From the sequence record MK250028.1: 64,000 nt of DNA; one strand, given 5' to 3'. The notes beneath the pieces were generated by a model, which saw only the letters and a program-made list of their open reading frames with translations, was not told where the DNA came from and did no database searches. The position numbers were made by a program, and so were the translations under genes. This document shows, piece after piece, positions 1 to 35,357 of this stretch; the first letter of the stretch is position 1; every line of letters begins with the position of its first letter.

Positions 1-630
1 AATAGTGCAACTGTTGATTCAAAAACAACACCTATGCCAATGTCAGCAAATCTTAATAATAAAATTGAGCAATCTGTTAAATGGACAAAAAAATATACAT
101 ATAATGCAGATACCTGTACATTTACAGAAAGTACATCTGGCACAGAAACAGTAAATACAAGTAAATTACCTTATATTACAAAAGATGTGAAATCAATGTC
201 TTATAATGGTACAACAACTATTGCACAAGCTGCAAGCGCTATCTAGGGATTCTTACCATATCAATACTTAAATACGTTAACAACAAGTAATGCAATAACT
301 TATTTAATGTGTTAGGCTACAGGTTATAAATATTCATCAAATAAAGAATTACCTGCATATACATAGGCATTCTCTGAACTTATACCATAGACAACAGAGG
401 CGGAAAAACCAGCGTCAACATAGAAATTCCCTATGTTTATTGATATTACTTTGAATAATACTACAATTACATTTAAATTGATAAGTGTTACTAACGTATT
501 TGATTCTGCATATTTGTTTACTCAGCGTACATATGGTACAGAAAATAGTGGATTAAACTATATGAAATTAGGATCTAATTCTTTATATGGTACATGGCAA
601 GCGTCATCAACAAATTTAAAGACTCTTTAA
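1..630 (+). CDS. Hypothetical protein, 5'-truncated by window edge (likely late/structural)
   Basis: ORFs 34..246 and 433..630 share a frame and are joined only through TAG codons; ends TAA at 628-630. Confidence 0.75.
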
Positions 631-656: not shown

Positions 657-3600
657 ATGAAATATAATGGAACAGATAATATTATAACTGATAATGACAT
701 CCTTGTTACTTCCAGCGCTGGAAGTAACAAGGATCTTCATACAGTTATAGAAGAACAACAATATGACATTGATGAATTAAAATCAAATGTCAAATGGATT
801 TATAAATACGGTGGTGTCGGTGGTGTCGGTGGCTCCGGAAGTGGTTCTGTAAGTGCTGGAAAATGGTCTGCAGATGTATATATTAATGATGTGCCAGTAA
901 CTAATGGTTCTATAACTGATTTATCAAAAAAACTTATTAATGATATAGCTCCTATTACTGTCAAAGTTTCTATTAAAAACCCTTCTGCTGGTGGATATAA
1001 GTTTAAATTGGAATATGGATATGATGATGGTTCATTCCAAACATATCCTCAATCATTAACAACAGATAATAATTGTAGTGCAGAATTTAATCTTAAAATT
1101 TCAAAAAATTCACAATTAGTTATAAAAGTAACAGATATAGATAATAATTATAAACAGACGATATATAAGTACTATATTTATGGTTTAGATTATAAAATAA
1201 TTCCAATGACTTATAATAGTCAAGGTGTTTTATATGAACTTAAAGATTTTGATTATAAACCTAGTCAATTTCCAAATGGTGTTGTTTATAGATTATCAAT
1301 TAATAATTTCGCTGGATTTATAATTAATTATAATATTGTAAGTACTATTGATTGCAAAATTATATAGATTAATGAATAGAATTATAAACTATATAATACA
1401 GATAAAAATAATGGTTCATATTATGATAATGAAAATTTAAAAGGTTATTTACAATCAAATGATACTATAATTACATTAGATTATTTAATAACGCAAGATA
1501 CTTTGAAAAATGAACTTAACTTTGGTTCTCAAACATTCATGGCGTATATAGAAAGTATAAGTAATGGTATTTCAAATAAAAATGAAGTAAAATCAGAATA
1601 TTCTATTGTGCCTGATAGTAATCAATATGTTATATGTTTATCTGAATCTATTATGGGTAAAGTTTATGATGATAATACAAATATTAGCATAGTAGAAGCA
1701 CAAAAAAAAGGAAATGCGTTTAATGTAGGTGATTCCGTATCATTTAAATTAAGACCATTTAATTTCTCCTCTGATACAATTACAATTAATTATACATTAA
1801 TTAATACGGAAAATGATATTAATACTTCTAGTATTATAAATTTAAAAGCAGGACGTTATATATCTCAATCATTTAAAGTATATTCGGGATGGAATAAGTT
1901 AATAATTAATACTAATATTGTAAAATATTATTATGGTGTAAAAATTTCAGCTTCTGTAAACTGGTATAATCAAAACGGTGAAAATAATTCAAAGGCAAAG
2001 AATCTAGATTTATCTTATGTTCGTTTTTATAATAGTATATCAGATAATATGAAAAATGAAACCAATTTTAAATAGATATATGTCAATAACTATTTAGAAT
2101 TAAATACTAATATAAATGCATAGGATAAAGTTATTAATTTATATAATAATAAAACGATAAATACAGCTACAAAAGTAGATACTCACTTTGCATTTAGTAT
2201 TCAATTCTCAGGGGCTAATAATACAGATGATACTATTTTTGAATTAAAAAATGAAAAGAAAGATATATTATTTTCTGTAACATAGAGTTCTATTAAATGT
2301 AATTAGTTTACTAGTAATAATGATATAAAAATATATATACCAAAAGAAAATAATTATACACCATCTGATGCAACTAAATATCATTTAGTTGATATTTATA
2401 TTAAAAAAACAGATCCATATACATTAACAAAAACAGTTAATAATACAAATTCTGTTGATATGCAATATTATTTAAATGATTTAGCAGATGATATAGACGT
2501 TTCTAATTCTAAAAAAGAACCTCAATATTATATTGAAGTATATATTGATGGTATTACAGATGGTGTTACTAAATATTTTGTATCAACATATCCAAATATA
2601 TGTTATTTATGTTTAAAAAATATAAATGTATCATATAACTTATTTGAATTAGGTAAATTTAATAATGAATCATTAAAATTTAATGATATTGATGCAGATT
2701 TATATTATTACACATATAAGTATATATTAACTAAAGGAAGTGGTGTTACAAAAAATAATATAGACTTAATATATAACTTATCATCATTAGATTATAGTGC
2801 ATCAATTTCTCCTGATTTAACACAATAGTTGATATTAAGAAAGCATAATCAAATATGTATATCAAAAGAATATTTAGATCAGTTAAAAAAAATGTTAGAT
2901 GTGCCTATTTATATAATAAATGTTGCACATACACGAGAGAATGATAATATTACATCTATTTTTTAGTGGTTAAATGGAACGTATCAAGAGAATGATAATA
3001 TTACTGCATGGCCTGTTCAAACGATAAGTGTTCAAGGAAAACATAAAACAGGTATTACGTATGTCGCTCCAGATGATACAGTAGGTATAGAAGTTGAGTT
3101 TCCTGATGACGATGCATATACATAGGCATTGTTTAATATAAATATTCAAGGTTCATCAACTAGACAAAATCATGGTAAAAACTTAGATTTAATCTTGGTT
3201 AATAAAGATACAGATACTCATAATAAATTATTATATTCTCCTAATTTTGATGAAAATGATTCAAATACATATTTACCAGAATCTAAATTTACATTAAAAG
3301 CAGATATTGTAGACTCAGCACATTCTAATAATACTGTAATGGGTAAATTTATTAATCAGAATACATAGAAATTTGATACAGCATCAAATGGACAATATAA
3401 AAGTTATATTAAAAACTGTTTGGAAGGATTTCCATGCATAATTATATTAAATGTTGATTATGAAGTTTCGGGTTCATCTTCTGAATATTATTTCATGGGT
3501 TTATATAACTTTAACTTAGGTCGTGGTTCATATTCAAATTTAGGATATGTTAATAATTCTATATTTGATAAACAATTATCATCTGTAACAGCACTTAAAC

Positions 3601-6600
3601 CATTTGAATTTTTTAAAACAACAACAGATGAATATGAATTGAGAACTGATTTTGGATGCGCAGAAATAACAGGTAATAATCATAAATTTGATTTTTCACA
3701 ATGGGATGATACTATATTATATCCATTTGAAAATGAAAATGGTAATACATATATGTGGGATGATATAGTAACCAGTTAGGAAGGTGCATTTAAAATCGCA
3801 TTAAAATATTTCGTAAGAGATATTGCTATTTCTGGAGGTTATATATTTGATTATTTAGGTAAAGAAGCGATAGACCATAAAAAATGGGATGCAGATGGTG
3901 GATGGAACCATATTGGCGGTGTTCCTGATGTCAGTAAACAATATAAGCGTACATCAGATGATACTACTGTATCATATTATGATCCTACCATTAAAGTACC
4001 AGAAAAATCTAAATGGCAAACTATATTCCAACGTACAATGTAGGATGGTTTTGAATATAATGGAGATATATCATATTCTCGATTAGATTATACATCCGCT
4101 GTAGAATATTACACAATTTGTATGGCATTTGGTTTGGTAGACTCTGTATAGAAAAATTTAAATGTTCGTACTTGGACATTAAATAAAACAAATAGAAAGG
4201 AAACAGATCCAGAAGAAAAAGATTTAACACGTTCTAAATTCTATATATCATTCTACGATATGGATACATGTTTGGGTATCGATAATAACTCTAATGATAC
4301 AACAACTTTCTGTTTTTCTGATTATTGGGAATCAACTGATACTGAATAGAATGGTGTACATATTATTTCATCTATTAATCAATACAGAGATTATTTTTCT
4401 GAAAAATATACAATTACTGATGCTTCTACAGGTATAAAATCTGGTGAAATTGGATACGATATACCATCATCATTCTTATTTGGTGTCGCAAAATATGGTA
4501 CAGAAGTATTTAACACAGATGAACTTTTAAAATTAGATTATCTTGAATATCCAACACCTACATTATTATGGATAAGATATAGAGCAGGAAATACAACAGC
4601 ATATGATAAACCTGGTACAGGATCTTTATAGAATGCACAATATTTCATGGATACTTATTATAAAAAACATATGGAAGGTGTGTCTGAATTAGTATTCAAT
4701 TTAAATTATAAAGTTAAATATCTTGCATATAATATATAGGAAAAATGGGAATTTGATTCAACAAAGAAGAATACCTTTATAGGAACATATACAATAAATA
4801 ATAAAATTAATTATTCTTCAGGTTTCCATAATGATATACAAAAATTTAGAGGTCGTTCTATATATCGTGTATATGATTGGTTAAATTCTAGATTACATAT
4901 ATTAGATGCATATTTTAATTTACAAGATTCACGAGAACTTTTATCTGTATCTGAAATAGAAAAATAGCATCAAACAAATAAAAATACCACTAATACAGAA
5001 CTTGTTCAATTACGTTTATCTGGCAATAACTTGGATGACAGTGTAAAAACTATAGTATCATTATTAAATACTTCTAATGATATTAACATTAAGAGTCAAA
5101 TATTTAAATCTAGCACAACAGATAATCCAAAAATTAATTTTCCATCAAATCCTATAACGTTACAAGTTAAAGCTCAAAATTATTCACCAATAATGTTTGA
5201 TGTCGGTGGTACAATTCAAGGTAAATATTTATTACGTTCATCTGCAAATACGTATTAGATAACATTTAGCGGTTCCGGCAATATAGCATTTGCACTTTAT
5301 GGTTCAAATTAGATAACATATTTAAGTAATGTTACTTGGTATACACCAACATCAATGATAATTGAATCTTCAAATCTTACAAATATTTATGGAAATAATC
5401 CTACATATAATGTAAGTGTTAATAAATTAATGTCTCCTGCATTATAGAAAATTGAATTAATGGGTTATAATTATACGGGTTCATTAGAATTATCAGATAT
5501 ATCTACATATTCAAATTTAAATTTAATTAATATATCAAATACAGGAATAAATTTAAAGGCGACAGATATTAATGTATCAACAATAAATGTATCTGGTGTT
5601 TCTGCTACAAAATGTGAAATTTCAAGATGTAATAAATTATCATCTTTAAAATTAAGTGAATTAAAAGTAACAGATGAATTTTTATTAACTGTTAATTATT
5701 CAAGTAATGTATTATTTAATGAAATTGAAGCAAAACGATTCTCAGTTTCTTGCTCAGTTGTAAATTAGAATAATACAATAGTTATTGATGGCTCACGTGG
5801 TAAATTTTAGACGCTTGAAGAATTAACTATCTCTGGTTTTGCAAAAGTATAGATTTATTCTTGTCCAAAATTGTAGAAAGTTACTATTAGTGAAATTACG
5901 TCTGGAGATGATGCAAAAGATATATATTTGAAAGAACTTGCTATTATTAATTGTTGTACAGATAAATTATGTACAGAATTTAATGTACTTTCATCTACAT
6001 CATCAAGTTAGGATAAAACATTAGATTTATATTCATTTAAGAAATTATCTAGAATATGCTTCTATGGAACATAGAATTTTGAACAAGCAATTTTACCAGA
6101 AACATTAAATTTGCAAGGTAGTGAATTTGGTAATTGTAAATCATTGAAATATGTAGATATTAAAACAAGTATTGGTACAAAAGCAAGTAAAATTACTATC
6201 AATGGATATGATAAATATGTATTATCTTCATCAGCTAAAAGTACTAGAGGATTAACATTTATTACATATACTGCACCAAATGTAGGATGTTTCTATAACT
6301 GTTATGAATTTAAGATGGAACGTACTGTAAATGATAGTTCAGTTGTACCTATTCGCGTAAGTAATTCCGTAAAATCTTTGGAATACTTATTTGGACTTGA
6401 TTCTCATAATAGTAATATAAATTTAGCAAAAATCTCGAATTTTATAGATAATATTTCTATAAGTAATAGTATTACATCTATTAATTATATGTGTATGAAT
6501 CAAGATGGCATTAAATTATCAAAGGAACAATTTGTCGCAGATGGACCAGATAAAGCAACCTTACACTTAGGTACATTTGGTAAATTATCTAGTGGTAATC

Positions 6601-9347
6601 TTGTAGATGCATTTTATATTAATACGATATATATTAATAAATGGATATGGTATGATAAAGATAAAAAACAAATAATCAGTTGTAATAATATTAATAGATT
6701 ATTTGGTCAAGGTTCAAAGAATTTATATATGACAATAGATTGTTTATATCCTATACTGAATAAGATCTAGTATTTAATTGGAATTACTACTTGGCAGACG
6801 ATAATATATCCTATATATTCAGGCTCTTCATAGAAATTTGATGTATATACAATTCTTACAGATGAAAAGAAAACAGAAACTTCATGGAAGGATAAAACAA
6901 CATATACAAAATCTTATACATTTAATGGTACTATTGGTAATTTGATTACGAATCAAGTTGTTCCTGCTCGTGCCATATTTGTTAATGAAACAGGTGCTTC
7001 TCATACAGTAGATTCTCAAGATAATACAGGTGCAATATATCCTACTGCAATGACAAGATTCAGCGGTATTTCATTCTGTGCATCTAATGTACAATGGGAT
7101 TTATATGGATTATTTAGTAAGAAATGGAAATTATAGTATATAGATTTTTTCCAAACATTTGGATTCTCTACAGTAACAGAATATGAAGATTTATTTAATG
7201 CTAAATTTATGCCATCAACATTAATAGATATTAAACATAGTTTAAATACATCATTCAACACATCTGTAGATTATACAAGATTCTTAGATTTTAACACATT
7301 AATTACTAATTATAATAATTCAGTTCCATCAAATGCAATGTTTAATTACGAAAATGGAGATTCTCTTAATTATGCTACAGGATTAACATTTACTAAACAT
7401 ATTAGCAGTGATACATTTAAAGAATGGATGGTATATATATTTAAAGCAAATAATGCTCAAGGTATAACTAACTTATTCAGAAACTGTAATATATTAGTAA
7501 GTCAAGCAGAAGCAAATAATAAATGTGATTTCAGTATAGAAACGATATTTAGCGATTATGGCGAAAATCTCGTAATAAATTAGAAAATACATAATATATA
7601 TTGTTTGTTCTATAATTTACATTGTTATATTAAAGATAAGTATGATATAACTAAAACTAGTTAGTCTGCTGAAGTATAGTATATGACATTTGGTACAGAT
7701 ATGTTTAAATACCTTCCAAATATAACTACTGTTTCATCAGCGTTTACAAATAACTATTGGAATGACCCTATACCATTTAATGTATTTAATAAACGTTATA
7801 AATGTGATGATACATATTATTATCTTGAATTCTTTGAAGGTACTGATATATTAGTAACTGATGAGAATAAAGGTCTTAATGAATATAAAGATAAAAAGAA
7901 AATAAGAAAGAAGATAAAATATGTTTCATATAGTTATAAATAGGTAATGAATTAGGTTAATTCATGTTTCGCTAATATTCATTTTAATCCTGCTTATATT
8001 TCTAACAGATATACTGAAGGTTCTGATATTATTAAAGAAGCAGGTATTAATTATTATCAATTTATAAATGATGATAACACTGTTATAAATGATGATGAGA
8101 AAATATATATTTCTGAAAAAATAAAAGTATTATTACGTTCTACTGGTAATAATAGTGATTATATATACCCATCATATGAATATTATGATACATTAAATTT
8201 GCATGGTGCATTCTATGAAGGTAATTTTGAAAAAGCCGGCACATCTACTGGTGTTACTAATGTAACGTCTTCTATTCAAAAAGCGCCATTAACAAAGTCT
8301 GTATCTGAATATTTAGAATCACTTATAGTTGCGCCAGATTTATTATATGGATGTCAATCATCTGCATCAATATAGGGTATAGTTTCTCAATATGGTGTAT
8401 CGAAAGATATGTTAACTGGTATTTTACCTGCTCATTTCTATAAGCAAATGAAAACATTAGTAGGTGGTACATATGAAGTGTTTACTGGATGTCTTGTAAT
8501 ACCAAATTATGTTGGTACATATGTAAATTATGATTCTAACGGAACATTGAAACTTCGTTATAACATATATACATTTATACCAGAAGAATTTGTAAATTCT
8601 GATATGAATAATTTATAGAATATGTTTAGATTCTATATACATTGGCCAAAACAAGGTCAAACAGAATCAGGCGTGCAAACATATGATTTTTATGTATTAT
8701 CTACAAGCAATTCATTTGGAAGTAATATAACGTCATTAAATAATGCATTCCCTGTTTCATCAGTTGTTTCATATCAATCATATGGAACTATATCAATAAA
8801 TTATCAAACAGCTAACAGATCAATTCACTATAATTTACAATGTACATATTAGACTCAATCTTATGAAGCATCAAAGAAATCAGAGATATTTGGAACACTT
8901 AATTATGATAATTTGAGATATATATCAGTGTTTGATACAGGCCTTAATATGGAAATATATAAGTCATTAAATGTAACTAATTTAATAACAAGTATAAACT
9001 TATTATATGGTTACTATGGATATATATTTAACTCTTCATATGATACAAGAAATATAATATTAACAACAAATTCAGAAAATAAAAAATATTATTGTATTAA
9101 TGTAAGTGCAAATTATCAATGGCAATCTAATTAGTTATCATGTAATATAATATTCCCTATATGTTCTAACACATCAGAAACAACAAGAAGATTATTATAT
9201 TTCTATGATATTCCATAGAATGCTAAATTTAATACTAACATAAGTATGTTTTCAACTTCAGAAAATAGAGAATATTATAAAAATATGTTTGATAGTATGT
9301 TTACATTCAATGATAATGAAAAATATAGTTATGCTACATATGAATAA
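657..9347 (+). CDS. Giant 2896-aa virion-associated protein with CotH-like kinase domain (~3120-4920) and C-terminal leucine-rich repeats
   Basis: Fourteen track ORFs in one frame; I translated the gaps and found only TAG until TAA at 9345-9347. Kinase motifs IQGSST..HGKN, DIVDSAHSNN, LEGFP, YFMGLYNFNLGR, AFGLVDSVQKN, FYDMDTCLGIDN, WLNSRLHILDAYF; LRR-like units such as YSNLNLINIS, CNKLSSLKL, CPKLQKVTI. Confidence 0.85.
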
Positions 9348-9442: not shown

Positions 9443-12400
9443 ATGGATAATAAATGTTCAAGACCTGCTTTGATCCATAGCTTTAATCCTAAACCATTCA
9501 AAGATATTGATACAGCCATTTTCGCGCTTAATAAGAAAGATTTAGCAACAGGTGAAATAGCTATAGCATATTATAAGGATGTTGATGAAACGAGAGGAAT
9601 CGGGGCAGTAATCGCAACTGGTAATATTTTACCAGGTGGAAATCAAATATTCAAGAATACTGCATATACTGATAAACTTATAAAAGTTGTAAAAGAATCT
9701 ATTGAATCTAACTCTGTTGATATAAGTGTAATCGAAGAAAATGTAAATAATAACATTGCAGATATTGCATTAATTAAGGAACAACTTAAATCGTTGTCTA
9801 TTGATTCAAGTAATAATCAATCTTCCGTTGATAATAAGATGAATGAAATCAATGAAATCATCAGTAAAATGAAAGAAGATATGAATAATATCATAGATAA
9901 TATTCATAAAGTTGTTGCTGATGCATCATAGTCTCTCACTGATTCTACAGATACTATATATACCGATTTCAAAGGAGCAGACACTTCTTTAAAAAACTAT
10001 ATAGATGATGAAAACTTAAAAATTTCTCAAAAAATTGATGATATTTCATTAAAAAATGTAGAAAATAAGCAAGAATTATTAGATAAAATTAATTCCAATA
10101 CATCTATACTCGAAACTACAATTTATGATGTTTCAACATAGTTGACTGATGACATTTCTATATTAAACAATAAGGTAGAAACTTATAATAATGACTTAAA
10201 TACATCTTTAACTTATAATGTATCTACATTAAAATCTCTTATATCAGATAATAAGAATTATGTTGATAAAAGAGAAAATCTTATCAGAGAATATATTGAT
10301 TAGAAAGATAATCAATTAATATGGCTAATAGGTGATACTTCTAAACATATTCATTTCCGTATAGATAAAGAAGTTCATGACTTAAATGATAGAATTACAT
10401 CTGAACACCTTGATATGAATAAAGTTGTTGCAGATAATAAAACCGATTCAAAACGCTATACAGATTAGGAAATATCATTAGCTAAAGATTATGTGGATGA
10501 ACAAACTGAATATCTTAAATCAAATATATCTCAAACTGAGTTAAACTCAAAGAAATATACAGATGAATCTATTACTTCATTAAATAATAAGTTATCAGAA
10601 TCAATTAAGAATACGTCTATATATGCAAAAGATTTATTTGATAACTCTAATGAATATGCAGATAAATTAAATAATTCATAGAAAGTTTATATTGATGATG
10701 AACTTAGAATGCAAGATGAACGTTTAGTTGACAATATAAATTCTGTAAAAGATACTATTAATACAACAAAATCTGAATTAAATGTTTCTATTAATAAATC
10801 ATATGATAATGCAGTAAAATATACAAATAAAGTACATCAAGAGACTTTACAACTTATTAAAGAATATGATAATAAAGTAAGATAGGATTTTTCTGAAGCA
10901 GATATTAAGTTAGACAATAAGATTAATGACACTTCTACATTAATTTGGAATTATATAGGCAATACATCTGATGCTATTGTTCAATTTGTTAAAGATACAT
11001 CCAAATTAAATTGGGATCATACAAATGATACATCCGATGCTATTGTTAAATATATTAATGATACATCTGACGCTATTGTTAAATATATAAATGATACTTC
11101 CGATGCTATTATTCAATATGTAGATTAGCAAGATCAATTATAGAAAAATTATACTGACAAAGAAGTATCTACTTTGAAATCATATGTAGATACAGAAAAC
11201 GCTTCTATTATTGCTTATGTTGATAATCAAGATGATAAAGTATTGAGCGAAGCCTCAATTTATACAGATGGTAAAATTCAGGAAGTAAATAATACTATCC
11301 ATGATCTTGATGAAAAGGTAGAAGATTATAATAGAAATACAAATAAGTTACTTGATGATGTTTCTGAAGGTATTATAAGAGATTATACAACTGCAATTAA
11401 TAATCTTAATCAAGATGTTTCCAGAAATGATACATGGTTATATAACCATATTGAAAAATATAATACAAATTTATCTACTGCAATTACAACTAATGATTCA
11501 GATACTAAAAAATTAATTAAAGATGTTTCTGATCTTCTTGATTAGAAAATTGAAGATACATCAGATATTCTTCAAGGTGTAATAGATGCGTTGAAAATGC
11601 AACATAATACTGATATTACAACGACAAATACTTCTATTATGTCTTATGTTAATAATTATAATACTAGTACATCAGAAATGATTAAAGCAATGAACACTAG
11701 TATTAATACATATTGGGAAAATGCCGATGAGACTATCGAAAATTTACTTACTAATGTTTCTAATGGTATTCTTCAAAAAGTTAATAATATACAAAAAGAT
11801 TTATCTACTTATATTCAAACAGCCGAATCTACTTTAAAATCATTATATGAACAAGCAGATGACGGACTTCTTGGATATATTAATAGTTAGGACGCAAAAC
11901 TTAATAGTAGTATAAATGATATTTCAACAAAGATTGTAAATAAATTTAATAATGATATTAGTATATTAAATGATAAAGTTGATACTAATTTATCTAATTT
12001 AAATACATCTATTAATAGTGTTCATGATATATTATTTAGGAAAATTGAAGATACATCTACTGAAATTGTAACGGCTTTGAATACATCTATTAGTAATATT
12101 AATCAAAAGCTTACTACTAATGTAACTGAAATTTATGATAAGATAGATGACGTTAAAGATGATATTTTTGAAAAACTTAATGTATCTATTAATGGTATCA
12201 ATAAAATATTAACTGATAAAGATACAGCATTAGATAATAAGATTGATAATAAGTATACAACTATTATTAATGCAATGAATACATCTGATGGTATTTTAAA
12301 TGATCGTATTATTAATTTAGAAACAAAACATACAAATGAATTAGATAATGCGGTTAAAACGTTAAATAAATTAGTTTCTGATACAAAGACAGAATTATCA

Positions 12401-14020
12401 GGTGACGATACAGCAAATAAAACAGAATTAATAACAAAATATGATAAGTTGACTTCTGATAATAAGCAAGCTATATCTGATTTGAAAAAAGAATTAATCA
12501 ATGTATCTAATGGTATCATTACAGATTATAAGAAATTATCTAAAGATACATCTACAATGTTAGATAATAAGATTGAAGATATTTCTACTAAGATTGTAAC
12601 TGCATTGAATACATCTATCAGTAATGTATATGATGAATTAACTGGAAACATTTCAACATTATCAATAACTGTAAAAGATACATCAGAAAATATTGTTAAT
12701 AAATTAAATACATCTATTAATAAAGTATTCAGTGATTTATCAAAAGCAGATACATCTTTATCTACACGTATTGATGATGCAAGTAATTTAATTCCTAAAC
12801 CATAGACAGATGCAATTACTACAGTTGATTCACAGAAATATGTATGGAGTAACGGTAATGTAGCATCTGAAAAATGTGTTGTTGGCGCAGGTTAGACAAA
12901 TATTGTAGTAAAAGATAATAAGGTACAGTTTGTATTAGGTGCATGGAATAATGGTGCAATAGGTTTACGTTTTACAGAAATACCAGAAACAAATACAGTT
13001 GCAAATGGTCTTTTATCTGTTGATTCTAAATTGAAGTATGATAATTACGCTAATTAGATTACTACTATTAATTCAGATATTGCAAAGACAAATACTAATT
13101 TGACTTAGGAAATTAAAGATAGAACCAATGCAGATGATTCGTTATAGTTAAAGATTACTACTATTAATGAAACTACAATACCTAATTTACATGAAGCAAT
13201 ATTAACAGAAATTTACAATAAGTATGATCCTGAAATTAACTCTATAAAAAAATCAATCAATACAACGTCTACTACATTACAAACTAATATTGATAATTTA
13301 AGAAAAAATGTATCTACTGAAGCAAAATCTAATCTTGATAAGTTAAATACTAGTATCAATAATAATGTATATACACCGTTGAAAAACTTAATTACTGGTG
13401 AAATTAGTAGAGTTGAAACTGATTATAAAAATGCAGATAGTACATTAAAAAAAGCTATAGAACTTATTAATAATACAACTATTGATTCTAAAGTTAATTC
13501 ACTTAAATCTGAATTAACAAAGAAGTATGATAATGAAATTAGCACAGTAAAAAATACTATTACTAATAATCAGGATAATATTATCAATACATAGTTACCT
13601 AATCTTAAGACAACAATAGAAACAGATTATAATAAGAAGTTTGAAACAGAATCAAATGAGCGTAAGACCACTGATTCATAGTTAAGAACTGATATTGAAT
13701 TGTTAAGTACGAAAGTAGATGGTATTAATACTAATATTGGTGATAACAATACTAATGTTACTAATTTACAAACAACAATTAAAGAACTTCAAGCAACTAT
13801 TATTGAGTTGAATTCACGTATATTAGCAGTTGAAGCATACGGAACAACAAATGTCGATTTTGCAAAACGTATTGAGACGCTTGAATCTAAATACAATAAG
13901 ATCACAGCAATTGAAAGTGATATTACTGGTATTAAAGAGCGACTTGATAATATTGACACTGAACATGAAGAATTATATTCAGGTGTTTAGGATTATAATG
14001 ATTCTATTAATATTAGCTGA
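9443..14020 (+). CDS. Long coiled-coil fibre-like protein A (1525 aa)
   Basis: Seven in-frame track ORFs joined through TAG; ends TGA at 14018-14020; N-terminal GEIAIAYY.D domain shared with the next two genes; coiled-coil character with [DN]xS repeats. Confidence 0.8.
10925..11122 (+). repeat. 33-bp / 11-residue tandem repeat, 6 units (NDTSDAIVKYI type)
   Basis: NDTSTLIWNYI GNTSDAIVQFV KDTSKLNWDHT NDTSDAIVKYI NDTSDAIVKYI NDTSDAIIQYV. Confidence 0.9.
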
Positions 14021-14035
14021 TAATATAAATATATA

Positions 14036-14080
14036 GAAATATGGTGATATAGAAAATAAAAATCTATATCACCATTTTCT
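14036..14080 (+). terminator. Intrinsic terminator
   Basis: Stem ATGGTGATATAGA/TCTATATCACCAT followed by TTT. Confidence 0.8.
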
Positions 14081-14119
14081 ATTTTAGATAAATATTTAAA
14101 ATATAAAGATTTAATATAT

Positions 14120-15778
14120 ATGAATGTTTACGATTCTCCACATATGCATGGAGTAAAACCACATCCATGTCCACCTCCTCCTGGACCACATCATGATCCT
14201 TTTCATCATGATCCTTGTTGTGAACCACCACATCATTGTTTACCTCCACATCATTGTGAACCACCATATGGATTAATCAATCATTATAATAAAGTATGTT
14301 TCAAGAACTATGATGAAGCTGTATATAAATTAAAAATAAAATCATTACTTCCTGGCGAAATTGCATTCGCTTATTATTTTGATAAGAATGCAGAATATGG
14401 TATTAACGCAATTGCAGCTGTTGGTTCTATTAAATTAGGAGCAACTAATATAATCTATGATAACGCTAATGATATTCAATCTCTTATTGAATCCCTTTCA
14501 ACAAAGGTAGATTCAAATAATGAGAAATTTGAAACAATAGTAGATCAATTCGATGATATTAATAATGTTATTAAAGACATTAGTTCTCGTTTACATAAAG
14601 CTGAAGATAAAAATAATTCTTCTAATATTGATGCATCTATTTCAGATATAGATAATAAGATTGATACTATTATTCAAGATAACGTATCAATACATGACCG
14701 TATTGATACCCTTGATTCACAAATGGATCAAGTAACTGATTATATTGCATAGCATGAATTAGATTATCAAGCACTTGATGCATCAGTTAAACAACTTCGT
14801 GTTGATGTAGATTCATTAGGACTAGATGATAAACTTGATGAATTAGATAAGAAGATTAATCAAACAAAAGAAGATATACTTCTTGAAACAAAGGCAGACA
14901 ATGCATCATTAGAAGCTAAACTTACACAAGAATTTAACGGTAAATTACAAGATTATTCTGATTCATTAGATAATCTTAAAGTTGAAATCACTCAACAGAT
15001 TACAGATACAGTTGAACCTTTAAAAACGGATATTTATGATTTACAAGTTAAAACAACTGAATTGGAAACAAATATCGGTAAAGCAAAGGATGAAGCAGTT
15101 ACTGCATCCAAAGAATATACAGATAATCAAATATCAGACAAGATGCAAGGAATTAATAGTTCACTTACTGATATGTCTAATACTATTCATGATTTATCTG
15201 ATTTAATTACCAATGTTTCTACTAATGCAGATAATGAACGTAAAGAATTAAAACGGTATATTGATTAGGTTAAGTCTGATATTGAAGGTGAAAATACTCA
15301 ATTTAAATCTGAAGTAAATTCTGAAATTAATAAACAGAAACAATATATTACAGATACTATTAACGGATTTAAGGCAGAATATACTGCAACAACAGATAAA
15401 GCAATTGATGAAAAAGTAAAGGTTGTATCTGATAAATTAGATAATTATATCAATGAATCTACAACTAAACATTCTGAAATTGAAGCAAAGATTTCTACTA
15501 TTAAAACGGATTTTGCAACATATAAAGGTGAGTTAAACGAAACTATTGCTAACAAAATTGCAGAACAAAATACAAATATGAGAAATTATTTGGATAACGC
15601 AATTTCAACAGATAGATCATACTATGATTCACTTTATGCACGTAAAGATCAAATACCTGTAAATGTTGTATCAGGTGCAGGTGTTACGGTAGAAAACGGT
15701 GTTGTTAATCTTAATGTTGACAGTAATGGTGTATTAACAGTAGGTGGAAAACGTTATCAATTACAACAATTGAATTAA
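14120..15778 (+). CDS. Coiled-coil fibre-like protein B (552 aa) with His/Pro/Cys-rich N-terminus
   Basis: Three in-frame track ORFs joined through TAG; ends TAA; shared LPGEIAFAYYFD domain follows an HPC-rich leader. Confidence 0.8.
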
Positions 15779-15803
15779 TAATTTTAACAAAATTAAATAT
15801 ATT

Positions 15804-15839
15804 AGAAGAGATTATTTTTATAAATAGTCTCTTCTTTTC
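15804..15839 (+). terminator. Intrinsic terminator
   Basis: Stem AGAAGAGATTATTT/AAATAGTCTCTTCT (one G-U pair) followed by TTT. Confidence 0.75.
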
Positions 15840-15864
15840 TTTTAATAAATATAAAAAGAAATTT
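15840..15864 (+). promoter_or_regulatory. Putative late promoter, exact 25-bp copy of 29312-29336 (-)
   Basis: TTTTAATAAATATAAAAAGAAATTT, ending 13 nt upstream of ATG 15878. Confidence 0.65.
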
Positions 15865-15877
15865 AAAACAAATAAAC

Positions 15878-18800
15878 ATGGCAGGATTTATGGATAACAA
15901 ATATGGTTCACATGTTCCACCTGTTGGACTTAATGGTTTCAATAAAATATGTTTTACTGATTAGAAAGAAGCTGAAACTATGTTATTGGATAAGCCGTTA
16001 ATGCCTGGCTAGCTCACATTCGCATATTACTATGATAATGTTGCGACTAATGGTGTAAATGTAATGGCAGCAGTCGGAACATTAAAAGGAGAAGGTTCAA
16101 ACCATATTTTTGTTAGTTATGAAACTATAAATTAGTTAATTGATTCCATTGATGATTCATTTGAAGATTTCGATACTAGTTTAATATATATTCGGAAAGA
16201 ACTTATGAGCAAGCTTTCTGCTCTTGAAGATGAACAGAATAATTTAGTTTTACAGATAAGAGATAATGTTAATAATTCTAATGTAAGTTTTAACGAAATT
16301 TATACTAAATTAGAAGAGTTAGAAACAAATGGTAAACAATATACAGATGAGAAAATTCAAGAGATAAGAGATTATGTCGATACATCTGTAACAAGTAAAA
16401 TCAATGATTATGAAACAGTAGTTTCTGATATGATTTTAGATGCGTCTACAAAATTAGATTAGATGCAAAAAGATTTTGAAGATAAAGCTTAGGATATTCT
16501 TGATCGTAGTAATGAAGTATATGACAATCTTGATGTTTCTCTTCGTAATTATGTTAATAATGAAATGTTAGGAATGCAACAGTTTGTTCATAACGAAACA
16601 ACACAAGCCGTTTTAGATATGAATTCAAAATATGCGGTTTTAAAGAAAGTTGTTGCATCTATTAATTCATCTGTTAATGATATTGATAAAAAACATAATG
16701 ATAAGGAAACAGAATTATCAAGAAATATTGTAGAAACAGCAACACAATTAACAGAAGACTTAGAAATTGCAAATGTTTCAATCATTAGTTATATTGATCA
16801 ATAGACATCATTATTCAATAAGAAGATTGATAATAAAATCAATGAGCTTGAATTTAATACAAAAACTAAAAATATAGATTTAACAAATATCGTAGAAGAA
16901 TACCAACATTCAGTTAAGAATGATATTGCTGTATTCAATGCATCTATGAGAACATATGTTAAATCTAGTCTTGCCACCGTTCAAACAGATGCTAATTCAA
17001 AATATTCAGAATTAAAAACATATGTAACATCAAATGATGCTTCATTATTAAATTATGTTAATGCAATGGAAATTGCACAAAAGACATATATTAATAAACA
17101 TGATTCTGAAATTAAATCTTGGATTGCAACATCAGATACTTCTTTATTCAATATTATTCGTTCAACAGATAGTAAATTAAAAGATGATCTTGACGCGATG
17201 GATGCAAGACACCAATCAATGTATCGTACAGTTGAATCACGTCTTGATAACCTTATTGATGATATTTCTACAGATCTTACTATCATGGTTAATGAATACG
17301 GTAAGGAAGTTAAGAACTTTACACGTAAACATGTAAATGATTTAGAGAATAAAGTTAAAGCACAAAATGTAAGTTTAATTAACTATATTGATGATAAATC
17401 TCAAGAAGCAGTAAATGAAACTCGTTTACTTAATGCTTCACTTAGAACTCAATTAAAGAATACAACAAACTTACTTAACGCAAGTATCAATAATGCTATT
17501 CAATATACAGATGATGAAATATCTAAATTAAAATCATATGTTGATACAGAAAATACTTCTATTATTACTTATGTTAATAATCAAGATGATAAAGTAAGAT
17601 TCTATGCAGATTATGGAGATAATGAAGTTCGTAAATATATTGATGAACTTGAAGAGCAACTTAAGAAATATTCTATTACTGGTGATTCTTCTGTTATCAA
17701 TTATATTAAGTTAACAAAAGAAAATATTGAACAATTTGTTAAAGATGCAGATGATGATGTTTTAAAGAAAGCATATATTCATGATGATGAAATCAAAAAT
17801 GAAATGACAACTGAATATAATGCATTTGTTCGTAAGCAGAAAGATATTGATGCATCATTATTAAATTATGTTAAGAATACAGATACTTCATTATTTAATT
17901 ACATAAAGGATAGAGATGAACAAATAAAGAGATGGATTGCTATTGGTGATACTTCACTTTATAACTATTTCAAAACATAGAATGCATCTTTGTTTAATTA
18001 TGTAAAAACATAGGATACAGAAATATAGAATAATCTTGTTAATAGTGTTTCTAAGATAGAAAATGATATGGCAAAATTCGAGACCAGTATCAATTCAAAG
18101 ATTGATTCTGCTGATATTGCTCTTGATAATAAATTAAATGCTAATAATGCTTCTATCTATACAATTCTTTCTTCTAATGATGTATCAATCATGAGTGCAG
18201 TTAATAAGAAAGATTATGAACTTGAAACAAAATTAAATAATCAAATTTCAGAAGTAAAGAACGAATTAGAAACAAAAGACTCTTCTATTCTTAATTATGT
18301 ATTGAATGCTGATACATCTATTAAATCACAACTTAATATAATTAAAGATACTATTAATAATGATATTAAAGTATCTCTTAAAGAACTTGATACAAAAGTG
18401 GATGTAAATGATGCTTCTATTATGTCTTATATTAATACAAATGACCATAAGATTGGTTCTTATATTGATACAGAAATTAATCGTGTAGAAAATCATTGCA
18501 AATCAAATGATACATCTGTTGTTAATTTTGTAAAAAAAGAAGATTCATCTATAGTTAATTATGTAAATGGTACAGTTAAACAAGAATTACTTGATAGAAT
18601 TAATGATACAAATACATCTATTATTAATTATGTTGCTGAGAATTCATCATTGTTCAATTATGTCGTTAATAATGATACTTTACTTAAAGCACTTATTGAA
18701 AGTAAAGATGGCTCAATTTTGAATTCATTAACAAGCGCTGATGCTTCTATTATTCGTTTAATTGAGAAATATAACTCAGAATTACATAATAAGATTAACG

Positions 18801-21800
18801 CAAATGATTCATCTATTAACTCAAAAGTTGATAAGTATAATTCATCTACATTTAGCCACTTTACATTAAAGGACGCAGAACTTCAATCTAAACAAGAATT
18901 AGCAGATACTTCTATTGTTAGTTTTATTAACACAACTGTATCTGATATGAATACAAGTATCAATGAGACTTTAACAAATATTGATAATAAAGTTGATAAT
19001 GTAAAATCTGATTTAGTGAATACCATTGAAACAAACAATACATCTATTGTTAATTTTGTTAAGTTACATGATACAAGTATTGAGAATATGATTAAGTCTA
19101 ATGAAGAAGTTTATAACTATATCAATACACAAGATACTTCTATCATTAATTTCATTAAGAATAACAATACTGATCTTGATAATAAACTATCAAGAGTTAA
19201 TACTGATGTTAACAATAAGATTGATAATGTTGAATCAGACCTTTTACAGGAAATTGTTAATAAGACAAATATACTTAATACTGATGTAAGACGAGAAATA
19301 GCTAATCTTTCTGATTAGATGAATGATTCTGATACTTCTATTCTTAATTATCTTAAAGCATCTGATAATGAGTTAAACAATAACTTATTGCAATTAGATA
19401 CAAATCTTCATAATGAGTTAGATAATAATAAGGCTGAATTAACTAATAGTATTAATAATGCTATTACTGCTTATGAGAATAAACAAACAGAATTCTAGTC
19501 TAATATTAATAATCAAATTGATACATTTAAAACAGAAGTATCTACAAATATTGATACATTAAATTAGACTATCCATAATGATATGTCTGAGTTAAGTTCT
19601 GATATTAGTACAAAGATTGCTGTTACAAATTCATCTACTATTAATTATCTTCAAAATGAAATTTCAAAGATTGATAATAAAGTTAATAACTAGAATTCTT
19701 CATTATCTGTAGCATTTGAGAACTATAAATCCGCAACAGATACAAGTATTAAGAACAAATTAGATTCATTTGAAACTAATGTAGATAATAAGTTAAATGA
19801 TAAATTTACAGAACTTAATATCACATTAGATACAAACTGGACTAATTTGATTAATTCTAATGAGCAGTTTAAGAATGAAATTCATAATGATATTGCAAAT
19901 CTTGAGACTAATACAAACAATAAGTTAAATGATTTTAAATCTTACGTAGATGAGCAGAATACATTACAGGATGTAAAGAATACATCTGCTATTAGTTCAC
20001 TAAGAACTGATATTTCAACATTGGATGATTAGATCAATACAAGATTAACACTTCACGAAAAGTTATGCGATAATAATATTCAAATTGCAAAGAATGAATT
20101 ATCATCAAAAATTGAAACTGTTAATACATCATTAATTAATTATATCGATTAGCAAGATACTAATATTAAGAATGAATTTGCTGAACGTGAATCAAATCTT
20201 CTTAATTATATCAATAGTTAGGATAATGAGCTTAACAGAAAGATTGATAGCGTTAATCATGATTTAACAGAAACAATTACAGATGTTGATCTTCGCGCAA
20301 CTACTAATATTAATAATCTTCGTACAGATATGAATTATGAAGTATCACGCCTTGATAAGAAGATTGAAGATACTGAAAGAGATATTAGAGCAGATGTAAG
20401 TACAGAAGATAAAAAACTCGATGATAGAATTACATCTGTTGACCATGACATCCGTCAAGATATGGAAACAAAAGATAATGATTTACAACAACAAATAACA
20501 GATGTTAGTAGAGATTATCGTCAGTTTGTTATTGATTCATCTAGCATGATTACAAAACATATTGAGAATGTTTCATCTAATATTCATTAGAGAATAACTG
20601 ATACTTCTGAATGTTTATGGCAATATGTAAATGATACATCTGACGCTATTGTTAATTATTTCAAGAAACAAAATACAGATCTTAAAAATTATTCTGATAC
20701 AGAAGATAATAAATTAAAAGGTAGAATTGAAAATGTTTCATCTAAGTTAATTGATGTTAGCAACGCATTGAATAAACTTATTGGTGTTGGAGACGTTACT
20801 TCTGCTATTGATACATTCCAAGAAATTGAAGAGTTCTTAAAAACGTATACAAATAAAGATACATTAACAAATTTATTAAAGAATAACTCTGATAATGACA
20901 AAGCTTATGCAGATAGTATATTACAAAGATATGATGAATATATAAAGAATTATATTTCTGATGGCTCTACTGATATATATAATTATATTAATAACACTTC
21001 ATCTGCAATTGTTTGGTGGGTATAGGATATTTCTAATAAATTTAAGAAGTATATTGATGCAAGTGACCTTATTCTTGATGGTAAGATTAGTGAATTAAGA
21101 GAAGACCTTAATACAACTAATAATAATATTGATGATTTAAAAGATTATGTAGATCAATAGGATAGAAAAGATAGAGATTATGTTGATGATATATCCACAA
21201 AAATTGTTACATATATAAATTCTACTTCTGATGGTATTGTTAATAACTTTAATGATACTTCTGATGGTATTGTGAGACGTTTTAATGATGCTTCTGATGG
21301 TTTATATAATTTTATTATTGATACATCTAATCGTATTGTTAATAACTTTAATGATGCTTCTGATGGTTTATATAAATTAATATTAGACACATCTGATGAT
21401 ATTGTTCATCATTTTAATGATGTTTCTACTCTTATTGTTAGAAGATTTAATGACGCATCTGACGGATTATTCCACTTAATTATGGATACTTCTAACATGA
21501 TTATACATCGTTTAAATGATGTATCTGATGGTATTGTTAAGAACTTTAATGATACTTCTGACGGTATTGTCAAACGTTTTAATGATGCTTCTGATGGATT
21601 ATATGCATTAATAAAAGATTTATCAACTCGTCATAATGAAGATAACACTTTAATGCAGTCATATATCAATACAGAAATAGGTAAAGTAACCGATTCTTTA
21701 AATACTGAAGTAATACAAATCAATAAAAATATTGGTACAATAGACAAAAAATATGAAGGGAAATTTAAGACTTTATATGAAAATGATATTGCAGACATTA

Positions 21801-23878
21801 ATTCTTCTATAACTAATATTAGAAAAGAATTTGTAACAGCTGATTATAATTCTAGCACACAAATTTATAATTATTTAAAGGAAACGTACAAGAAAGAACT
21901 TACTGGAGAAATAAGTAAAGTTGATAGCAAGTTAACAAATTATATTACGTCTAATGATAAAAAAGTTAGTGATCTTGATACTAAAATTAATAGCGTAAAC
22001 TCTGATATAACAACTTTGATTAATTCAAGTTATAATGAAATTAATGGATATATTAAAGATATAAGTACTCGTCTTGATAAAACTGATAAACGTTTAGATG
22101 ATAGAATTACAGAAATTAATAACACATTAACAAACTCTATTCAAACTAAACATGACACATTAGATGGACGTATTACAAAAGTTGATACTGATTTAAAAGA
22201 AAGTATTAAATCAAAATATGATTTGGTTGATGGACGTATTACTACTGTAAATGAAAATATTATTAAACGTATAGATCAATATAATACATCATTAGCAGGT
22301 TATACAGACCAAGAAATCAAAACAGTTAATAATGCCATTAATAAAGTTAAATCTGATTTAACACAAGAGATTACTAATAATGTAACTAATATTGATAGTT
22401 CTATTACACGTATTGATAATTATCTTGAACGAGGTTACTGGACAAAAGTTACTAATTATGTTGGTAGTGAAATAACAAAAGTTGATGAAAAGATTACTAA
22501 TCTTAAATCTGAAATCAATAATTCATTATCTAAAGATTATGTAACAAACGCATCACTTAATGATTATTATAATAACACTATTAAAAAATATGTTGATGAA
22601 CAAGATGCATTATATAATACATCCGTTATAGATATATCTAATAGATTAAAGACAACAAATGATAATATTAAATCATTAAATGATAAATTAACTGCATTAA
22701 CATCTGATAATATTGATGGAACTATCAATACATATAAAGAAGTTCAAGATTTCTTAAACTCTATATCTGATACTACTACGCTTGTAACATTATTGGCAAA
22801 TAATAAAAATCAAGCTATTGAATCTGCTAATCAATATACAGATAGTTCTATAAATAATTTCAAGAATACATATGTTAAACCTAAATTTGATAATTATGAT
22901 AATTCAATATCTACAATAAATGGTGACATTAAAAATATTAATGGTAAAATAACTACTAATCAAACTGATATTACAAATCTTACTACCAGAGTAAATAAGG
23001 CAGAAACTGATATTAAAAATATTGATGGCAATATTTCTACTATTACTACTGACATAAATAAGTTAAAAGATTTTCAAACTACTGTCAATAATAAGAATTA
23101 TTTAACAGAAATTACTGTTGCTAATGATAACAAATTAGGTGGTATTAAAACTGGTTATACGCCAACCGGCGCAAATGCAAGTAAGCAATTACCAGTAACA
23201 TTGAATTCTGACGGTCGTGCATATGTAACACTTACAAATTCAGCGGTCACAGGAGCATATACTTATACATTACCAACAGCAAATAATTCTGAACTTGGTG
23301 GAATCAAAACTGGATATACTAATAATGGTAATAAGGTCAAAGTTGAAGTTGATGGTTCAGGAAATGCATATGTTGCTCTTACTGAAACAGCAGTCAAAGG
23401 CGGATTTACTTATACATTACCTACGGCTGGTACAACAACTCTCGGTGGTATCTGCACAGGGTATACTAATAGTGGATCAAATGTTAAGGTTCAGATGAGT
23501 GGTAATAATGCATATGTTGGTATTACTAAAGATGCTATTGTTAGCGCTCTTAGTTATACACCTGCAAAAGGTAATTCAGATGGCTCTAATACGTATACAT
23601 TACCTAAGGCAACAGGTTCAACATTAGGTGGTATTCAAGTAGGCTTTACACAAAGTACATCTGGTTCAACACTTAATCTTCCTGTTAAATTAGATTCAAA
23701 TGGTAATGCTTATATTAGTATTAACTTAACTGATTTATAGAATATTGGTGTAATAACAAATAATAATATTAATTCACATGTAACATAGGTTATGTCTGAT
23801 GACACTGCATGGGTTACTCAATCTCAATATGGAAATATCACAGATAAAGGTAGTAAAACTTATTACATTTATGAATAA
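15878..23878 (+). CDS. Giant coiled-coil fibre-like protein C (2666 aa) with C-terminal fibre repeats
   Basis: ATG at 15878; eight in-frame track ORFs joined through TAG; ends TAA at 23876-23878; N-terminal MPGQLTFAYYYD paralogous domain; C-terminal YTLPTA..LGGIKTGY repeats. Confidence 0.8.
21185..21613 (+). repeat. 33-bp / 11-residue tandem repeat, 13 units (NDASDGLYxLI / NDTSDGIVxxF)
   Basis: Exact 11-residue periodicity on translation. Confidence 0.9.
23108..23725 (+). repeat. Four ~47-aa phage fibre repeats (LPTA..LGGIxTGY..V.LDS.GNAYV)
   Basis: LGGIKTGY twice, LGGICTGY and LGGIQVGF, each followed by a G[NR]AY[VI]/NNAYV element. Confidence 0.85.
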
Positions 23879-24284: not shown

Positions 24285-25484
24285 TTACTCAAATAATGCA
24301 TTTGCTGTTTTTACTGTTCCGTCTGTATTAATGTACTTATCCATACCCTTGAATATTTCTGCTTCAATTGCTTTCTTCTTATCATAACCTTCATATTGTG
24401 TACCTTTAAGCAATATTTGTGATTTAAGATTCCAAAAGCTTTCATTTGGAGTATCATTAATCATATATTCTAGTGATTCTTTATAATCTTGTATATATTC
24501 AGGGAATAATTTACTGTTAAGCTCTACCAATGTACGCTGACGCATTAATCTATCACTAAAATCAATATCATTTATATCTCGTTTACATACTTTTTCAAAT
24601 ACCGGTTTTAATTTTGATTCAGAATCAAGTAAATCTTGAACTGTATTAATACCGCATATTTCACGAACTTTCTTTTCCTTACTTGGTGTAATTCTTACTT
24701 TGCGTCCATCTTTATACCAATTATAAAATGAAGGTACACAATCACCATCGTCACCACAAAATATCTTATCAAGAACAACATTATTTGGATTCTCTACAGA
24801 TAATTCCATAATAGTATTTGATTGAAGTAATTGTTTTACATAAGTCTTAGATAAATCTTCATTCTCGAAAAATATATCAAAATTATTATCTGATTTATTA
24901 TACCATGTTTCAAATGCTTCTGGTACATAAATATAACGTTTACTACCTTTACCCTTACCTGTTGTATTATATACTATGCAATATTGATTTGTTACTGTAT
25001 TGAAATCAATAAGTTGTCTAATATCTGCATCTGCGCTTACAATGATAACATTATAATTTGGATATTTCTCAAACACTATTTCTTTACACATACATGCAAT
25101 ATCATCTGCTTCACAATGCTCCACCTTTGCTACATGCATAGAATTCCTTGATAAAATCTTAAGAAGATCATCTGAGCATTTAAATATATTATCCCAATTT
25201 ATAGATTCCGACTTTTTCCTATTTGACTTATAACCTGGATTTATATCGTCTCCGGGAAGAACATCTTTTCTCCATGCATGTTGAGCGTCTGTTGCTATAA
25301 TAACATTTGTAGGTTTGAATATATTAAGAATTGAACATACATCTGTTGTAAACTTATACATGAATGAACGTACGTCTTCTATTCTGTTATATCCGTTGAC
25401 CTAACCATATAAGCTATTCATAAATAATGATCTGAATAAAAGGTTAGACCAATCCAATACTAATAATACTTTCTTACTTTCCAT
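24285..25484 (-). CDS. rnh: T4 RNase H-like 5'-3' exonuclease / flap endonuclease (399 aa)
   Basis: VLDWSNLLFRS (recovered only by reading TAG codon 28), IIATDAQHAWRK, EADDI, IVSADADIRQL, GDDGDCVP. Confidence 0.88.
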
Positions 25485-35300: not shown

Positions 35301-35357
35301 AGTGTCCAAAATATTAAATATACCGTTAAGTGCTTCTTCTGAAGACATTTGTGCCAT
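29388..35357 (-). CDS. Tape-measure-like protein (1989 aa) with a multi-pass hydrophobic block and five ~80-aa repeats
   Basis: Seven in-frame track ORFs joined through TAG; ATG 35357 to TAA 29388-29390; helical Ala/Ile/Leu-rich; hydrophobic segments at 32238-34210. Product name is inferred. Confidence 0.7.
30790..31995 (-). repeat. Five ~80-aa repeats (P[IV]MDxVSKFVDxIMK[LV]AT..Y..GYD..GKP.Y)
   Basis: Translation shows KYIDIIMKVAT, KFVDVVMKLAT, KFVDTVIKVAT, KFVDAIMKLAT, KYVDAILKLAT. Confidence 0.85.

Follow-up and report, generated by a model that had tools for sequence, protein, structure and literature searches.

A recoded giant protein of a Lak megaphage joins a divergent CotH-type kinase-like domain to a leucine-rich-repeat arm

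Phage proteins in which a CotH kinase domain is fused to a hypervariable C-type lectin have been reported and described as unstudied (PMC8008677), and in the CotH of Bacillus subtilis two aspartates, D228 and D251, are catalytic and both required for activity (PMC7821199). Closer in build are three Crassvirales proteins: cr124_1 gp19 (YP_010113143), for which RefSeq gives 'spore coat protein-like protein; similar to spore coat protein/internalin/CotH kinase', cr60_1 gp48 (YP_010112401), annotated 'internalin-like', and crAss002 gp20 (QIG59130), annotated 'transferase/internalin-J, leucine rich repeat'. In the literature searched we found no paper treating this protein family. Here we examine a gene of the same kind at positions 657-9347 (+) of a 64,000-nucleotide stretch of sequence record MK250028.1 (the window throughout), which comes from a Prevotella Lak-B megaphage and encodes a protein of 2,896 residues. 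Lak phages are described as uncultured (PMC11165621); they have a suppressor tRNA and release factor 2 and decode TAG as glutamine (PMC8346664), and the reassigned codon is reported to occur in their genes for late structural proteins and for lysis (bioRxiv 10.1101/2021.08.26.457843). The reading that we prefer, with moderate confidence, is that the protein is a virion tail appendage with a leucine-rich-repeat (LRR) binding arm and a probably active CotH-type kinase; the frame and its code, the homology, both predicted folds, the conservation of residues and the gene order are what the analysis establishes, and its virion location, kinase activity and substrate are what we infer.

Judged from its sequence, the Lak protein is an orthologue of the ~2,500-residue 'spore coat protein-like/internalin-like/transferase' proteins of Crassvirales, with homology over the full length, the same domain order and the same phosphoesterase gene upstream. 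A word search returned 505 homologues at E <1e-3, the kinase region matching ~2,500-residue proteins at E 1e-104, and the set holds Lak proteins of 2,763-2,902 residues, many proteins of ~2,500 residues on contigs of ~100 kb, and others of 2,650-2,870 residues on contigs of 200-370 kb. By tblastn against phage records, the candidate kinase domain is 98.2-98.6% identical to its counterparts in seven Prevotella phage Lak-B genomes of ~545-550 kb, 56-79% identical to those of other Lak clades, and 23-37% identical to those of Crassvirales and of Bacteroides phages of 167-179 kb. An identical protein is already on record in the protein collection; the Lak-B1 record carries no annotated features, and the Lak records list none under the matched region. 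The gene and its parts are as follows.

657-9347 (+): whole gene, 2,896 codons and a TAA stop, with 39 TAG codons read as glutamine
657-851 (+): conserved N-terminal head, residues 1-65, a helical stretch ending LKSNVKWIYKYGG and then a Gly/Ser-rich linker
852-3053 (+): variable middle region, residues 66-799, 16% identical to distant homologues
3054-4946 (+): divergent CotH-type atypical protein-kinase domain, residues 800-1430, from predicted fold and motifs
3150-3182 (+): N-lobe motif GSST..(H)GKN, residues 832-842, from invariant columns and hhalign pairing
4140-4157 (+): predicted catalytic loop D1162-S-V-Q-K-N1167 (Asp-x4-Asn), from hhalign pairing and invariance
4254-4265 (+): Y-D1201-M-D1203 (CotH 'WDxD'), from alignment and invariance
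4947-5453 (+): linker or small beta-rich region, residues 1431-~1600, outside both structure models
5454-9344 (+): predicted LRR solenoid arm, residues ~1600-2896, BspA/internalin-like with insertions, from profile and model

The case for the kinase begins with its fold. Residues 800-1450 were aligned with 17 homologues (18 sequences, down to 38% identity) and folded with AlphaFold, giving a model with a predicted local distance difference test score (pLDDT) of 72.9 and a predicted template-modelling score (pTM) of 0.78, in which residues 800-1430 carry a clear CotH atypical protein-kinase-like fold. With VIA, which is independent of Foldseek, Bacillus cereus CotH (5jda_A) aligns with the model at Z 17.6 and a root-mean-square deviation of 3.9 Å over 318 of 359 residues, and the next chains, all of them other atypical kinases (CtkA, PI4K2A, HipA, Fam20), reach Z 8.2 at most; Foldseek places 5jd9 and 5jda at ranks 1 and 2 (E 0.02, probability 1.00), its third match having E 2. 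The CotH likeness is more than chance because the fold match stands at Z 17.6. The first-pass annotation of this DNA had treated that likeness as hidden, which is incorrect insofar as it is already in the RefSeq notes of crAss-like orthologues and in the names of other phage proteins; among the BFVD structures that neighbour the domain model are gp353 of Bacillus phage G and, from gut phages, several proteins that go by the name of CotH kinase or spore coat protein, at 10-17% identity.

The motifs of the domain were GSST at residue 832 (nucleotide 3150), DSAHSNN at 886 (nucleotide 3312), EGFP at 923, DSVQKN at 1162 (nucleotide 4140) and YDMD at 1200 (nucleotide 4254); they sit in invariant columns of the 18-sequence alignment and are kept in the crAss002 and cr60_1 homologues, which are ~25% identical. 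Profile comparison by hhalign and hmmsearch with Bacteroidales CotH, for which we built a profile from 19 Bacteroidales CotH domains that are genuine Pfam CotH matches, was marginal (E 1e-3 to 1e-1 against tiny sets), and its alignments, which served residue mapping and not proof of homology, repeatedly fell on the catalytic region and the N-lobe motif. In the N-lobe, Q831, G832, S833, T835, K841 and N842 are invariant across the 18 sequences, and the looser hhalign alignment pairs GSST..KN with CotH 'rGn(s/t)Sr...KKS', LKAD.VDS with 'L...DpS' and G.YNF with G.Y; K841 is our candidate for the nucleotide-contacting lysine. D1162 is aligned to the aspartate of CotH 'NWD' (hhalign, E 0.11, a weak match), in a loop that is the counterpart of the B. 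cereus 'NFD....N' loop and of B. subtilis D228, and Y-D1201-M-D1203 is aligned to CotH 'WDxD', with D1201 as the equivalent of the metal-binding D251 of B. subtilis. D1162, N1167, D1201 and D1203 are invariant across the 18 aligned homologues, as are F, Y, D, M, D and T around the metal-site motif. The two aspartates lie 23 residues apart in B. cereus CotH, as seen when one Bacteroidales CotH is aligned to 5jd9 by phmmer, and this is also the spacing from D228 to D251 in B. subtilis; in the Lak domain the spacing is 39, through an insertion. The first-pass annotation had proposed a CotH-like kinase core from these motifs, all of which lie where it placed them, and its proposal is borne out by the predicted structure, with 5jda well ahead of the next chain, and by the presence and invariance of both aspartate positions. 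Because both catalytic aspartates are present and invariant, the alignment favours a putatively active kinase over a dead scaffold.

The arm was modelled separately, residues 1697-2896 being folded with 22 homologues (pLDDT 85.5, pTM 0.81). LRR proteins account for 50 of 50 Foldseek and 50 of 50 VIA matches listed, at Z 7.5-11.6, including TpLRR (Z 11.6), the Bacteroides protein 4fs7 (Z 9.8) and InlJ (Z 9.8), and among the matches listed Toll-like receptors and plant receptor ectodomains cover longer spans of the arm. Repeats can reach a Z of about 10 through overall shape, but every match listed belongs to this one fold class. The family profile searched against the PDB also finds the BspA-type LRR structures 4gt6 (E 2.5e-6) and 4fs7 (E 6.3e-6), over approximately residues 1622-1927. 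It is because the structural matches are unanimous and are joined by sequence-profile matches that the predicted LRR solenoid at residues 1697-2896 is a safe call. The single sequence gives no Pfam LRR match at E 10; PF13306 is present in one homologue, and a weak LRR_RPS2 match occurs in the orthologue of SJC03, a cultured Bacteroides thetaiotaomicron phage. An arm of ~1,400 residues had been claimed, and its LRR nature stands on profile and fold matches, with its length reduced to ~1,300 residues.

How the protein varies along its length carries much of the argument for what it does. Identity to distant homologues of ~2,500 residues is 48% in the head (residues 1-65), 16% in the middle region (66-799), 36% in the kinase domain (800-1430), 24% across residues 1431-1696 and 14-15% in the LRR arm (1697-2896), so that the kinase domain is the most conserved part after the N-terminal head and the LRR arm the most variable. 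A conserved anchor with a variable distal part is the pattern by which a tail fibre or receptor-binding protein may be recognised, and a conserved head and enzyme with hypervariable distal parts would fit a receptor-binding virion appendage. The N-terminus aligns with homologues from the first Met, and the head is a candidate virion-attachment module; a hidden Markov model (HMM) of the head matches orthologues only, namely those of Lak, cr124_1, cr60_1, crAss002, SJC03 and one contig from an assembly labelled Segatella copri. When the head was compared with the N-terminus of the upstream protein the similarity was not significant, the score being reached by 98 of 500 shuffles. The middle region gives a single sub-threshold Pfam match, to NusA_N at residues 306-368, which we take as chance. 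In the SJC03 orthologue, residues 514-659, equivalent to the Lak middle region, give a weak ConA-like lectin/glucanase (Laminin_G_3) match. There are hints in the sequence that the middle region may bind carbohydrate.

The reading frame itself is secure. Positions 657-9347 (+) form one continuous frame of 8,691 nucleotides and 2,896 codons, closed by TAA at 9345-9347 and containing 39 TAG codons and no TAA or TGA before the terminal stop; under table 11 the same stretch is broken into open reading frames (ORFs) of at most 236 residues. Reading through TAG across the plus-strand block at 1-23.9 kb gives ORFs of 2,896, 1,525, 552 and 2,666 residues, and ORFs at ~42-61 kb of the window are almost free of TAG. 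In an alignment with four homologues for which DNA is available, the positions opposite TAG hold glutamine in 63 cases and TAG in 122, glutamine being ~5 times its background of 2.5%. TAG encodes glutamine in this genome, since long ORFs appear only with read-through and glutamine is in excess at the TAG sites in homologues, and the earlier proposal of a 2,896-residue protein masked by recoding is upheld. No tRNA genes occur in the 64-kb window. On the minus strand, 29388-35357 holds an ORF of 1,989 residues with 36 in-frame TAG codons and no Pfam match; it overlaps a G+C-richer stretch (0.33 at 32-34 kb, the window as a whole having G+C of ~25%) with TAG-free opposite-strand ORFs of 244 and 376 residues.

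The gene is accompanied by a partner, of which the window holds the end.

1-630 (+): upstream partner, the C-terminal 209 codons of an LTD/metallophosphoesterase-type giant whose start lies outside the window

In the Lak-B1 record the full upstream ORF runs from 15902 to 20611 and encodes 1,570 residues; its alignment with the 'phosphatase' of cr124_1 spans 1,519 residues at 39% identity (873 bits). Pfam finds LTD and Metallophos (calcineurin-like phosphoesterase) domains in the cr124_1 protein, in crAss002 gp19 and in SJC03_82, and the 'phosphatase' encoded before cr60_1 gp48 has both domains as well; the Lak upstream protein itself gives only a weak LTD match in Pfam (E 0.001). The downstream protein of 1,525 residues was considered as the phosphatase partner and ruled out, its similarity being coiled-coil-like only; the partner is the upstream gene. 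The order phosphoesterase and then CotH/LRR gene recurs in cr124_1, cr60_1, crAss002 and SJC03, the last having a coiled-coil protein, an LTD/Metallophos protein and then the 2,657-residue orthologue (SJC03_83, at 9685-17655 of its record). The kinase/phosphoesterase pair is a two-gene module common to Lak megaphages, several Crassvirales families and SJC03-type Bacteroides phages, and because the pair is common to phage groups with different portals and genome sizes, we take it as a sign that phages of the Prevotella/Bacteroides pool have exchanged a host-interaction module horizontally. The Crassvirales copies of the pair have structural genes on one side and the lysis genes for holin and L,D-carboxypeptidase on the other, crAss001 has tail fibres and spikes at the corresponding location, and phosphatase domains are listed among Crassvirales tail-spike subunits in an account that stresses the diversity of the region (PMC10136315). 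Two contigs of ~101 kb in assemblies labelled Segatella copri encode a TAG-recoded orthologue of 2,506 residues and are the only matches in the species-genome collection; their appearance is that of crAss-like phage genomes that binning has placed in Segatella copri metagenome-assembled genomes, and such contigs would fit a Prevotella/Segatella host common with Lak phages.

The virion and host-binding part of our reading, which the first-pass annotation had put forward as well, rests on context: the recoded late block, the portal, the fibrous flanks, the tail-spike position and the conservation pattern. The CotH/LRR gene lies in a late structural module, within a TAG-recoded block, with a T4-like portal gene ~18 kb upstream, with fibrous neighbours on its flanks (long coiled-coil giants with weak tape-measure-like PHROG matches), and with orthologues in the tail-spike region of Crassvirales. 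A prohead protease gene elsewhere in the window and the published recoding of late and structural Lak genes agree with this setting. We propose that the protein would be a tail appendage, held on the virion by its conserved N-terminal head, that the variable LRR arm, and perhaps the middle region, would bind host-surface structures, and that the conserved kinase domain would be a phosphate-transferring enzyme. Its substrate could be proteins of the virion or fibre while these are assembled in the cytoplasm, much as CotH acts in the building of the spore coat, or else a component of the host envelope.

Several observations weigh against this reading. The Pfam CotH model (PF08757, gathering score 23.8 bits) is silent for the whole protein and for the isolated domain, even at E 10, and the hhalign comparison of the phage-domain profile with Bacteroidales CotH reached E 0.11-0.13 in a single comparison. 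Other searches by sequence gave a similar picture: the whole protein and four pieces of it had no CotH, kinase or LRR match in Pfam and PHROGs, a six-frame search of the nearest genome record with the Pfam CotH model returned 0 candidates where control genomes matched, among PDB sequences CotH was found neither by phmmer with the domain nor by hmmsearch with the family profile, and a word search with the domain alone found fragments of the same phage family and no bacterial CotH. The residue mapping combines a low-significance alignment with the fold match and motif order and is not a residue-level superposition, and the structure models cover residues 800-1450 and 1697-2896 only. On the side of the virion, the head resembles neither a known fibre-attachment domain nor any crAss001 fibre, no orthologue occurs among the genes examined in crAss001, a phage with a solved virion structure, the literature searched holds no virion proteomics for the protein or any orthologue, the crAss002 paper does not mention 'mass spectrometry' or gp20, and the run index lists no RNA run. 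A kinase on an extracellular fibre would also have no obvious source of ATP.

The question of ATP leads to an alternative that we regard as unlikely, in which the protein is an ejected effector, carried inside the particle or at its tail tip and passed into the cell, where the kinase would use cytoplasmic ATP on host proteins, the LRR arm would pick the protein target as in LRR-bearing bacterial effectors, and the phosphoesterase would be a co-delivered partner. The catalytic residues are intact and ATP is found only inside the cell; the structural neighbours of the arm include the effector LRRs SspH1, IpaH and YopM (Z 8-10), but its closest LRR matches are equally surface proteins (4fs7, 4gt6, 4h09, TpLRR, internalins). 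Crassvirales are described as ejecting cargo proteins (PMC10136315), yet their copy of the gene stands in the tail-spike region and not beside the cargo and RNA-polymerase genes. LTD and CotH are, moreover, typical of secreted or surface proteins in Bacteroidales (CotH frames of up to 3,987 residues), and an LRR solenoid of ~1,300 residues would have to unfold to pass through the tail channel.

Doubtful to a greater degree is the notion that the CotH-like domain is a kinase-derived scaffold, a non-catalytic structural or ligand-binding module of the fibre. The domain is ~300 residues larger than CotH and unseen by the CotH Pfam model, the model has pLDDT values under 50 at its residues 35-40 and 86-89, adjoining the N-lobe motifs, and an adhesin role is documented for fungal CotH proteins (PMC6561750). 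Set against these points, D1162, N1167, D1201, D1203 and the GSST..KN element are invariant in phages whose proteins are 14-16% identical outside the domain, and invariant catalytic-type residues amid such divergence are the mark of selection on chemistry and not on shape alone. We hold it very improbable that the protein is a late enzyme that stays out of the particles and serves assembly or modifies the envelope inside the infected cell, with fibre proteins or precursors of the host envelope as examples of what it might phosphorylate: CotH itself is an assembly kinase for the spore coat (PMC7821199) and the long fibrous products of neighbouring genes are possible substrates, but 2,896 residues with a fast-evolving arm of ~1,300 residues and a conserved head would be costly and odd in a catalytic helper, and the CotH of B. 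subtilis is itself assembled into the coat, so that a role in assembly is compatible with incorporation (PMC7821199).

The tail-appendage reading can be extended to the gene pair, although we hold this extension to be improbable: the kinase and the LTD/metallophosphoesterase giant may form a virion-borne pair for phosphate transfer and removal, exchanged among unrelated Bacteroidales phages and acting either at the host surface, on its capsular polysaccharide, lipopolysaccharide or proteins, or, once delivered, on host proteins. If this were true, phospho-modification of the host envelope would be a step of phage entry, a mechanism for which we found no precedent in the literature searched. 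CotH labels on crAss orthologues and on other phage proteins were known before, and the Lak protein joins a known but uncharacterised group; new here are the structural support for a domain missed by Pfam and PHROGs, the conservation of its residues, the full architecture and the recognition of the pair as a common module. One of the largest genes of Lak megaphages thereby gains a defined architecture and a tie to proteins of cultured phages, and since two orthologues, crAss002 gp20 and SJC03_83, belong to culturable phages, it can be tested there why phages of gut Bacteroidales keep a kinase that is conserved and looks active on so large an LRR protein. That a fold search finds a kinase missed by Pfam and PHROGs also bears on the annotation of recoded gut phages.

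Other features of the neighbourhood deserve a brief record. The proteins of 1,525 residues (9443-14020 +), 552 residues (14120-15778 +) and 2,666 residues (15878-23878 +), together with a 457-residue neighbour at 11914-13287 of the Lak-B1 record, are coiled-coil-rich and give apolipoprotein-like repeat matches and weak tape-measure PHROG matches. All four have in common the N-terminal motif 'L.PGE(I/L).FAYY.D...(E).G.NA', a hint that they are paralogous fibres attached through one shared type of domain; the motif is absent from the CotH/LRR protein. At ~24 kb the coding strand and the sign of GC skew flip and the recoded plus-strand structural block stops, and the minus-strand block opens with a 5'-3' exonuclease gene at 24285-25484 (-). 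Further along are a polynucleotide kinase/phosphatase (AAA_33 and HAD_PNKP) at 47157-48092 (-), with no TAG, and a T4-type prohead core serine protease (Peptidase_S77) at 62003-63748 (-), with six TAG codons; positions 54052-54485 are 434 N, masked or an assembly gap.

Compared with Bacillus CotH (5JD9/5JDA, PF08757), the Lak domain has the same predicted fold and the same order of hallmark motifs and keeps the Asp-x4-Asn loop and the metal aspartate, at an identity of 12% or less; it is ~300 residues larger and is set inside a phage protein of 2,896 residues, and for it no CotB- or CotG-like substrate is known. CotH is also found in Bacteroidales, in 34 of 61 sampled genomes and often in open frames of 1,000-4,000 residues, with two copies in a genome labelled Segatella copri. 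Recent capture of the kinase domain from a host appears unlikely, because Pfam CotH gives these host proteins strong scores (up to 239 bits) and the phage domain no match at all. The phage CotH-lectin fusions likewise combine a kinase with a variable binding module, which in the Lak protein is a predicted LRR solenoid and not a C-type lectin; no diversity-generating retroelement was seen, though no search was aimed at one. The nearest relatives remain the Crassvirales proteins cr124_1 gp19, cr60_1 gp48 and crAss002 gp20. The Lak protein is ~400 residues longer than these, through insertions in the kinase and a larger middle region, and belongs to a phage of ~550 kb with a T4-like portal, where the Crassvirales orthologues belong to crAss-like phages of ~100 kb; its flanks are coiled-coil giants and theirs are lysis genes. 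Kinase identity is 37-40% to the cr124 type and ~25% to cr60 and crAss002, cr124_1 and cr60_1 are TAG-recoded as Lak is, crAss002 gp20 uses the standard code, and the conserved head, the kinase motifs, an LRR arm and the upstream gene are present in all of them.

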